A stretch of 63,766 nt of DNA, the filler included, from Olpidium bornovanus S191 (Eukaryota > Fungi > Olpidiomycota), in assembly GCA_017911155.1 (NCBI GenBank). It is 32 parts of 32 records of this genome, joined end to end, with 100 filler letters (N's around TTAATTAATTAA, not from the genome) between each part and the next. Parts side by side here need not be neighbours in the genome. Positions count along the whole stretch, not along the records: positions 52,488 to 53,638 come from JAEFCI010004354.1; 31 more parts are not named here. One strand, 5' to 3'. Below, piece by piece: positions 52,488 through 53,738 of this stretch. A program made the position numbers and the translations under genes. The notes under the pieces are model-generated. The model did no database searches. It was not told the DNA's origin and saw only the letters and a program-made list of their open reading frames with translations. Within the stretch, counting starts at the first letter, position 1. The number at the start of each line of letters is the position of its first letter.

Positions 52488-53577
52488 CATGCCTGTGGTA
52501 ATTTTCTCCAGAATTCCTGAGCTCAACAACGCTTTACCGAATGTCTGGGACACGGCGCAGATCTTTTCCGCCCCGTGTATCGCCGCTTCAAGTTCCAGCT
52601 GACCGCAGGACGGAGATTTCAACCTCTTGATAATGCTTCGGGGGACGATACGAAAGGAGCGGGAACATGAGAACCTCGCAGATTTTGGAAACCCGCTCGC
52701 GCAAAGCGCTACAACCCCGCCGAACGTGGATGTTCCTCACTTTTGTTGGATGTTAACGCGCTCCGCCATCGTGAATCCGACGCATCCAAGCGTCCTGTGC
52801 AGCCCGGATTGTTCAGAGCGGGAGCGGGGGACGGGGAGGGCCGGGTACCCAACAAGGTAGCGACGGGCACAGCGACTAACCGCAACGCAAGCGCCCTGGC
52901 TAGAGGTTCGGTGGACTCCAGCACATACGAGATGGACTTGACGACTTCGTCGGCAGTTAGGAGCTTTCGCAGGTGGGCGTGAGATCGCTCGAAAACGCGG
53001 AAGATGTGGTAGCGGACCAAGTTGTTGCTGTGCCGCGGAGTTTGAGAAGTTTTCCGCAGGGTGAGCGCGGGAGATGTCCGAAAAGACGCGGGCGGCGGGA
53101 CAAGTGACCGCCGTTGCGCGGGAACCGAGGCGGCCGTTTGTCGGCAGGATGCACGAAGCGGAGAAGGGGGGAGGGGGGGGGGGGGGGGGGGGGGGGAGGG
53201 GGGGGGAGGGAGGGAAGGTGAAAGGTAGTGCAGAACGAATCGCTGCACCATACTACGGCCGTCTACCTCGTCGTCCTAAACCAGTCGGCCAGCTTCAAAA
53301 ACCCGGCGTTGATGACAGTGGGAAACGGCTGCTCTTCGAACAACTGGCCGAACAGTTCGACGGCCTGCAGCTGCAAGCCCGGCTCGCCGGATCGGTACGC
53401 GGCCTCCAGCGTCGCGAGCTTGACAAGACCGCCGCGGCCGAAAGACGCGTCCGCGGACAGAGAGGGCGCCGCCGCTTCGGCGGAGCCGGCGGCGGGGACG
53501 GCAGCCGGCGCGCGCCTGCGGCCGAGACGCCCGTGCGGAGGAGGAGGAAGAGGAGGAGGAGGAGCGCCGCCAAACAT
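52488..53577 (-). CDS. INTS7: Integrator complex subunit 7 homolog, N-terminal HEAT region, 4 exons
   Basis: Spliced LATLEAAYRSGEPGLQLQAVELFGQLFEEQPFPTVINAGFLKLADWFRTTS/NNLVRYHIFRVFERSHAHLRKLLTADEVVKSISYVLESTEPLARALALR/TLGCVGFTMAERVNIQQ/NIIKRLKSP...LELEAAIH is collinear with the metazoan INTS7 N-terminus (PFPILINSAFLKLADxFRxGNN...DPVARAITLR). Confidence 0.88.
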
Positions 53578-53738
53578 CGCGGCGAGCTGACCGGCGAGCG
53601 GGCCGTCGGCGGCGGCCGGGACGTCGACCGACGCGGGGNNNNNNNNNNNNNNNNNNNNNNNNNNNNNNNNNNNNNNNNNNNNTTAATTAATTAANNNNNN
53701 NNNNNNNNNNNNNNNNNNNNNNNNNNNNNNNNNNNNNN

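Follow-up and report, generated by a model that had tools for sequence, protein, structure and literature searches.

Positions 52,488 to 53,638 of the window (the whole stretch of DNA that was analysed, 63,766 nucleotides with filler included) make up the entire contig JAEFCI010004354.1 of the zoosporic, root-parasitic fungus Olpidium bornovanus (assembly GCA_017911155.1), in agreement with the fungus-like genome noted in the initial annotation. The contig is 1151 bp long with a G+C content of 64%, and the sequence analysed is its exact reverse complement. It carries a single gene, located on the minus strand (52488-53577), while an Rfam search of the piece gave no RNA gene and hence no snRNA gene. 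Exons were built by joining three minus-strand reading frames at GT..AG sites, and the four exons so obtained splice to a product of 220 amino acids, with no stop or frameshift across them (Table 1). The earlier proposal of four exons with canonical splice sites is borne out by this model, as all three introns are of the GT..AG type and interrupt the coding sequence in phase 2. Open reading frames on the plus strand (e.g. 53074-53694, 206 aa) were without a family match, and were rejected as antisense artefacts of GC-rich sequence.

Table 1. Coordinates of the features of the INTS7 locus, counted along the window.
Feature	Position	Strand	Description
BJ554DRAFT_6879 model	52737-53577	-	mis-spliced
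Exon 1	53267-53577	-	311 nt; ATG at 53577; ends ...FLKLADWFRTT
Intron 1	53028-53266	-	239 nt, GTAGAC..CACAG, phase 2
Homopolymer-rich tract	53166-53217		in intron 1; ~50 nt, G-rich on + strand
Exon 2	52881-53027	-	147 nt; SNNLVRYHIFRVFERSHAHLRKLLTADEVVKSISYVLESTEPLARALAL(R)
Intron 2	52795-52880	-	86 nt, GTTAGT..CACAG, phase 2; within Arg codon of ..LR|..LG..
Exon 3	52741-52794	-	54 nt; (R)TLGCVGFTMAERVNIQQ(N)
Intron 3	52636-52740	-	105 nt, GTGAGG..CGAAG, phase 2
Exon 4	52488-52635	-	148 nt, cut by contig end; (N)IIKRLKSPSCGQLELEAAIHGAEKICAVSQTFGKALLSSGILEKITTGM...

A Pfam-A search with the spliced product identified INTS7_N (PF24436) with an E-value of 4.8e-42, well outside what chance would give. 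The score was 145.1 bits, where the gathering threshold is 42, and residues 54-209 correspond to profile positions 1-153 of 503. Among PDB chains, the product matched human INTS7 (8rbx_g and 7cun_G, both from Integrator cryo-EM structures) with an E-value of ~3e-28. Judged by sequence, the gene belongs to the INTS7 family, as had been proposed for 52488-53577. Residues 36-207 are collinear with residues 7-178 of human INTS7 (172 aa, ~40% identity; 7CUN chain G, 7PKS, 8RBX chain g) with only one 1-aa and one 2-aa gap, and cover its N-terminal repeats. The collinearity with metazoan INTS7 claimed in the initial annotation thus stands, whereas its size of about 150 aa was too low for both the product (220 aa) and the aligned part (~172 aa). 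Both motifs quoted earlier are present in the product, as PFPTVINAGFLKLADWFRTTSNN and EPLARALALR, and the Olpidium and human proteins have the PFPxxINxxFLKLAD, NN and D/EPxARAxxLR motifs in common. The fragment covers approximately one quarter of the gene (profile positions 1-153 of 503) and includes no HB or C domain.

Compared to human INTS7, the Olpidium protein has an extra N-terminal stretch of ~29 aa which is rich in proline and alanine. The first ~29-35 aa of the product are Pro/Ala/Gly-rich and of low complexity, followed by helical-repeat sequence; at the level of the DNA, residues 1-48 (53433-53577, minus strand) form a Pro/Ala/Gly/Arg-rich low-complexity segment (MFGGAPPPPLPPPPHGRLGRRRAPAAVPAAGSAEAAAP...) with 76-82% G+C. 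An N-terminal, alanine-rich low-complexity bias has been published for O. bornovanus proteins (PMC11878562), and the Ala/Pro-rich N-terminus of the fragment fits this bias, which is consistent with an Olpidium origin. It is reasonable to take the ATG at 53577 as the start codon, since residue 7 of human INTS7 is already aligned at Olpidium residue 36. The frame is open over the 61 nt upstream up to the edge of the contig, and an earlier start of Olpidium INTS7 may lie beyond that edge. The poly-tract noted before was seen in intron 1, where the plus strand has an uninterrupted G24 (53173-53196), an A and a G9 (53198-53206); the coding strand is thus a poly-C/pyrimidine tract (C24, C9), and the GC skew peaks here at 0.81. 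Such a G24/G9 tract could be a site prone to polymerase slippage or assembly problems, or could form a G-quadruplex or i-motif.

The only close database protein for the 220-aa query is the 199-aa 'MAG: hypothetical protein BJ554DRAFT_6879 [Olpidium bornovanus]', which derives from a different splicing of the same locus. Exon 1 is common to both models, after which the deposited model is frameshifted, so that QQLGPLPHLPRF... represents exon 2 read out of frame. It then retains intron 2, returns to frame in exon 3 and terminates at a TGA (52739-52737) inside intron 3. We could reproduce this model only by removing a 241-nt intron without GT..AG ends. Approximately 80 of its 199 residues, i.e. 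those from the out-of-frame exon 2 and the retained intron 2, do not correspond to real protein, and the re-spliced model regains ~95 residues of INTS7 homology in exons 2 and 4. The deposited protein already has a precomputed match to PF24436, and no correctly spliced (transcript-derived) version was found in the protein collection. The practical gain at this locus is a correction of the public record, in which BJ554DRAFT_6879 becomes the 5' part of INTS7.

Relatives were collected with a HMMER scan of 1.84 billion representative proteins, using a profile built from INTS7 of Backusella circina and the translations of the four exons, each in a row of its own, which gave 659 family members, 114 of these at E<=1e-30. 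A further search with a 172-aa profile, to which the human N-terminus was added, listed only proteins shorter than ~300 aa and absences from it are uninformative: full-length INTS7 proteins, the human one included, do not appear in it, and the full-length relatives used here come from the representative scan. The ten best nameable BLASTP matches are all from early-diverging fungi belonging to the Mucoromycota or Zoopagomycota (Mortierellomycotina, Mucorales and Basidiobolus), namely Dissophora, Actinomortierella, Mortierella, Lunasporangiospora, Podila, Linnemannia, Basidiobolus, Circinella, Spinellus and Apophysomyces, to which Backusella can be added. These best matches have 42-46% identity, and the maximum is ~46% among 264 relatives from the two large protein searches, which argues that the contig does not come from any sequenced genus.

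A phylogeny had been suggested as a check for contamination. In a neighbour-joining tree calculated from 164 sites of 166 N-terminal regions, the Olpidium fragment falls within a clade of 36 members, of which 21 are labelled, every one of them as Mucoromycota or Zoopagomycota. Next to the genera named above, this clade contains Massospora, Dimargaris, Tieghemiomyces, Dipsacomyces, Coemansia, Smittium, Martensiomyces, Bifiguratus and Calcarisporiella. The next branch out consists of four chytrids (Spizellomyces, Fimicolochytrium, Geranomyces and Blyttiomyces), followed by Balamuthia, Physarum, Dictyostelium and Naegleria, and then by the animals, a placement which agrees with the published position of Olpidium (PMC7865070). 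Bootstrap values were only 0.07-0.2, as is expected with so few sites, and for this reason scoring against group profiles and a comparison of intron positions were added. The fragment scored 185.6 bits with the Zoopagomycota profile and 182.0 bits with that of the Mucoromycota, versus 147 bits for Amoebozoa with Naegleria, 134 bits for chytrids and 125.7 bits for Metazoa, a margin of 35-60 bits, whereas raw identity does not discriminate (~41% to animals vs 38-40% to the fungal groups). With regard to orthology, the fragment groups with INTS7 of the relatives of Olpidium in an order that follows the species tree, albeit with weak bootstrap, and it is close to no single sampled fungal lineage, as is expected for a separate phylum.

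The introns were compared with those of INTS7 genes from a fungus and a fish. In B. circina, introns 1-3 are at the same codon and in the same phase 2 as all three Olpidium introns, and exon 3 measures 54 nt in both species. In the fish Sinocyclocheilus, introns 1 and 2 are identical in codon and phase, whereas intron 3 is absent, so that the Olpidium gene differs from the vertebrate one by its third intron. From these shared positions, introns 1 and 2 can be regarded as ancient opisthokont introns, and intron 3 as common to at least the two fungi, Olpidium and Backusella. Sharing of codon and phase speaks for a fungal gene that is native and was inherited vertically, and together with the nearest relatives, the tree and the group profiles this makes the native fungal origin of the gene well supported, in line with the earlier view that it is not a host or animal contaminant.

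Further likenesses to INTS7 of early-diverging fungi were seen in comparisons with B. circina K501DRAFT_241903, Basidiobolus meristosporus ORX91810.1, Lunasporangiospora selenospora KAF9585576.1 and Geranomyces variabilis KAJ3161856.1, which have the motifs LKLADWFRT and LELEAAI in common with Olpidium, whereas the Olpidium copy was deposited as a mis-spliced 'hypothetical protein' on a truncated contig. The full-length INTS7 proteins of related fungi are 770-1060 aa long. Basidiobolus, Mortierella and Spizellomyces each have the whole of INTS7_N, while INTS7_HB and INTS7_C were found in Basidiobolus and in a neighbouring gene model of Backusella; the region following residue 185 has 13-24% identity among fungi. 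Labelled INTS7 matches come from the Chytridiomycota, Zoopagomycota, Mucoromycota, Amoebozoa and Naegleria, to which the Olpidiomycota are now added. Full-length INTS7 is found in Balamuthia, Physarum, Dictyostelium and the heterolobosean Naegleria, the latter with all three Pfam domains, and on this distribution the INTS7 family appears far older than the animals. One review calls Integrator 'restricted to metazoans' (PMC9006982), another treats it as a metazoan complex that has a smaller version in plants (PMC10533338), and the presence of INTS7 in these amoebozoan and heterolobosean genera is contrary to the former statement, made in a 2022 review. The distribution of INTS7 as a whole rather points to an ancient eukaryotic complex, which disappeared at some point on the fungal branch towards the model yeasts.

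Several of the fungal orthologues already carry the name 'Integrator complex subunit 7' (or '... N-terminal domain-containing protein'), given by NCBI submitters or UniRef, which bears out the remark in the initial annotation that other early-diverging fungi might have auto-annotated homologues already. The novelty is reduced by this: the Olpidium gene is real but not new, an ordinary addition of one more lineage to a known family, and a fungal INTS7 would be unsurprising to anyone familiar with the species distributions in InterPro or Pfam. Conversely, no study devoted to Integrator in fungi, or to its range across eukaryotes, emerged from the literature that was searched, and Integrator is not mentioned by Merenyi et al. 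2023, so the biology of Integrator in fungi is largely unstudied. Nrd1-Nab3-Sen1 is unrelated to Integrator, being an RNA-binding heterodimer with a helicase and without an endonuclease scaffold. In budding yeast it does the same job, that is the termination and 3'-end formation of snRNAs and short Pol II transcripts (PMC10533338).

What the Olpidium protein may do can be considered by analogy with the human complex. In the human structures, the Integrator backbone is made up of INTS1, INTS2 and INTS7; the nuclease dimer INTS9/INTS11 is brought by INTS4 to INTS7, which also contacts RPB3 of Pol II, and INTS11 is then able to cleave the nascent RNA of the paused polymerase (PMC9006982). By this analogy, the full Olpidium INTS7 would be an alpha-helical repeat scaffold forming the backbone with INTS1 and INTS2 (PMC9006982), and would anchor INTS4 and the INTS9/INTS11 endonuclease while touching RPB3 (PMC9006982). 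The complex would then cut nascent snRNAs as well as promoter-proximal transcripts, and so end transcription (PMC9006982). A non-animal INT7-like scaffold could also serve a smaller complex for snRNA 3'-end formation, as exemplified by Arabidopsis DSP1, which has a shown role in snRNA 3' cleavage with a CPSF73-type nuclease (PMC5079582). DSP1 may thus be a model for a possible role of non-metazoan INTS7, although it has ~25% similarity to animal INT7 in the ARM region (PMC5079582), compared to the ~40% identity of the Olpidium fragment. An Integrator-based system for snRNA processing or attenuation in the Olpidium lineage is plausible, the basis for this being a single scaffold subunit.

Several other readings of the locus were weighed. 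As INTS7 is an alpha-helical repeat protein, and cross-matching is possible among such families, the gene might belong to a different HEAT/ARM-repeat family and resemble INTS7 by repeat composition only. The initial annotation had itself named a best profile hit to another HEAT family as evidence against INTS7, yet INTS7_N is the sole Pfam family at E<=1 for the spliced product, 100 bits over the cut-off and matched from profile position 1. The only significant PDB matches are likewise INTS7 chains, the next ones having E-values of ~0.7, and the intron positions are common to INTS7 genes of fungus and fish; this reading was rejected on the Pfam and PDB results, and we give it practically no credence. 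Contamination is a fairer question, given the history of the assembly. The source of GCA_017911155.1 was non-axenic zoospores from cucumber roots, with other organisms present, which were sequenced with a metagenome approach (PMC7865070). The Olpidium contigs were extracted by tetranucleotide binning and similarity filters (PMC7865070), giving a bin of 13,695 contigs and 29 Mb from a raw assembly of 187 Mb (PMC7865070), and the O. bornovanus proteome has a BUSCO score of 27 (PMC11878562). The contig could therefore come from another eukaryote in the zoospore preparation, such as a root-associated fungus or a protist, and have been binned wrongly with Olpidium, all the more so since 1151 bp is short for compositional binning. 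Against this, the identity of at most ~46% to any of the 264 relatives leaves no sequenced genus as the contaminant, the profile affinity and the place in the tree (on the Zoopagomycota/Mucoromycota side and outside the chytrids) are as expected for Olpidium, and the G+C content of 64% and the Ala/Pro-rich N-terminus fit the traits described for the Olpidium proteome. The plant host is an unlikely source, as the INT7-like DSP1 of Arabidopsis has a low similarity to animal INT7 (PMC5079582), while the fragment is ~40% identical to animal and fungal INTS7. Exact-DNA and protein-guided scans of the JGI metagenome contigs gave no overlapping or closely related contig. We consider a wrongly binned contig very unlikely, and put the probability that the contig holds the first four exons (220 codons) of a native, vertically inherited INTS7 gene of O. 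bornovanus at approximately 0.85.

A gene that is native to Olpidium could still be a decaying relic, or act outside a canonical Integrator, in a reduced plant-like complex or in an unrelated role. A single subunit is seen here, represented by its first 220 aa; the INT7-like DSP1 of Arabidopsis acts in a smaller complex with CPSF73-I (PMC5079582, PMC10533338), and in several fungal orthologues the HB and C domains are not detected by Pfam (E<=0.001), which indicates that the C-terminal parts diverge. If this is what happened, the presence of INTS7 implies no animal-type Integrator system. A relic is difficult to reconcile with four exons lacking any frameshift or stop, with canonical sites at all splice junctions and with the strong conservation of the motifs in common with human INTS7. 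The gene is moreover retained in every early-diverging fungal phylum sampled, which suggests purifying selection and thus a function, and overall we think it unlikely that Olpidium INTS7 is a relic or acts outside Integrator, albeit less so than an error of binning. With regard to the complex as a whole, we see roughly even odds that Olpidium and other early-diverging fungi keep a complete working Integrator (INTS1/2/7, INTS4/9/11 and possibly the PP2A arm), which would generate the 3' ends of snRNAs and attenuate transcription by Pol II, and that its replacement by Nrd1-Nab3-Sen1 took place within the Fungi, after Olpidium, the Zoopagomycota and the Mucoromycota had branched off. Should a complete Integrator indeed be kept in these fungi, the step from Integrator to Nrd1-Nab3-Sen1 could be placed on the fungal phylogeny, and would be testable in tractable Mucorales or chytrids.

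Finally, errors in gene models were also observed for INTS7 of other species. In B. circina (MU622265.1), the annotation divides INTS7 between two adjacent genes of the same strand, which are 155 nt apart and encode proteins of 257 aa (with INTS7_N) and 698 aa (with INTS7_HB and INTS7_C); these are almost certainly one INTS7 gene split by annotation. The INTS7 gene of Sinocyclocheilus rhinocerous (LAVF01S010980.1) is similarly split into a model of 153 aa and one of at least 228 aa, both with INTS7_N, and the first of these contains a spurious 'YL' derived from the intron after ...ARAITLR and ends in non-homologous residues. The Mortierella alpina protein KAF9966059.1, which clusters with the Mortierella INTS7, has the UniRef name 'D-aminoacyl-tRNA deacylase'. 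At 1233 aa it exceeds its 903-aa relative by 330 aa, and its gene model probably fuses INTS7 with a neighbouring gene.
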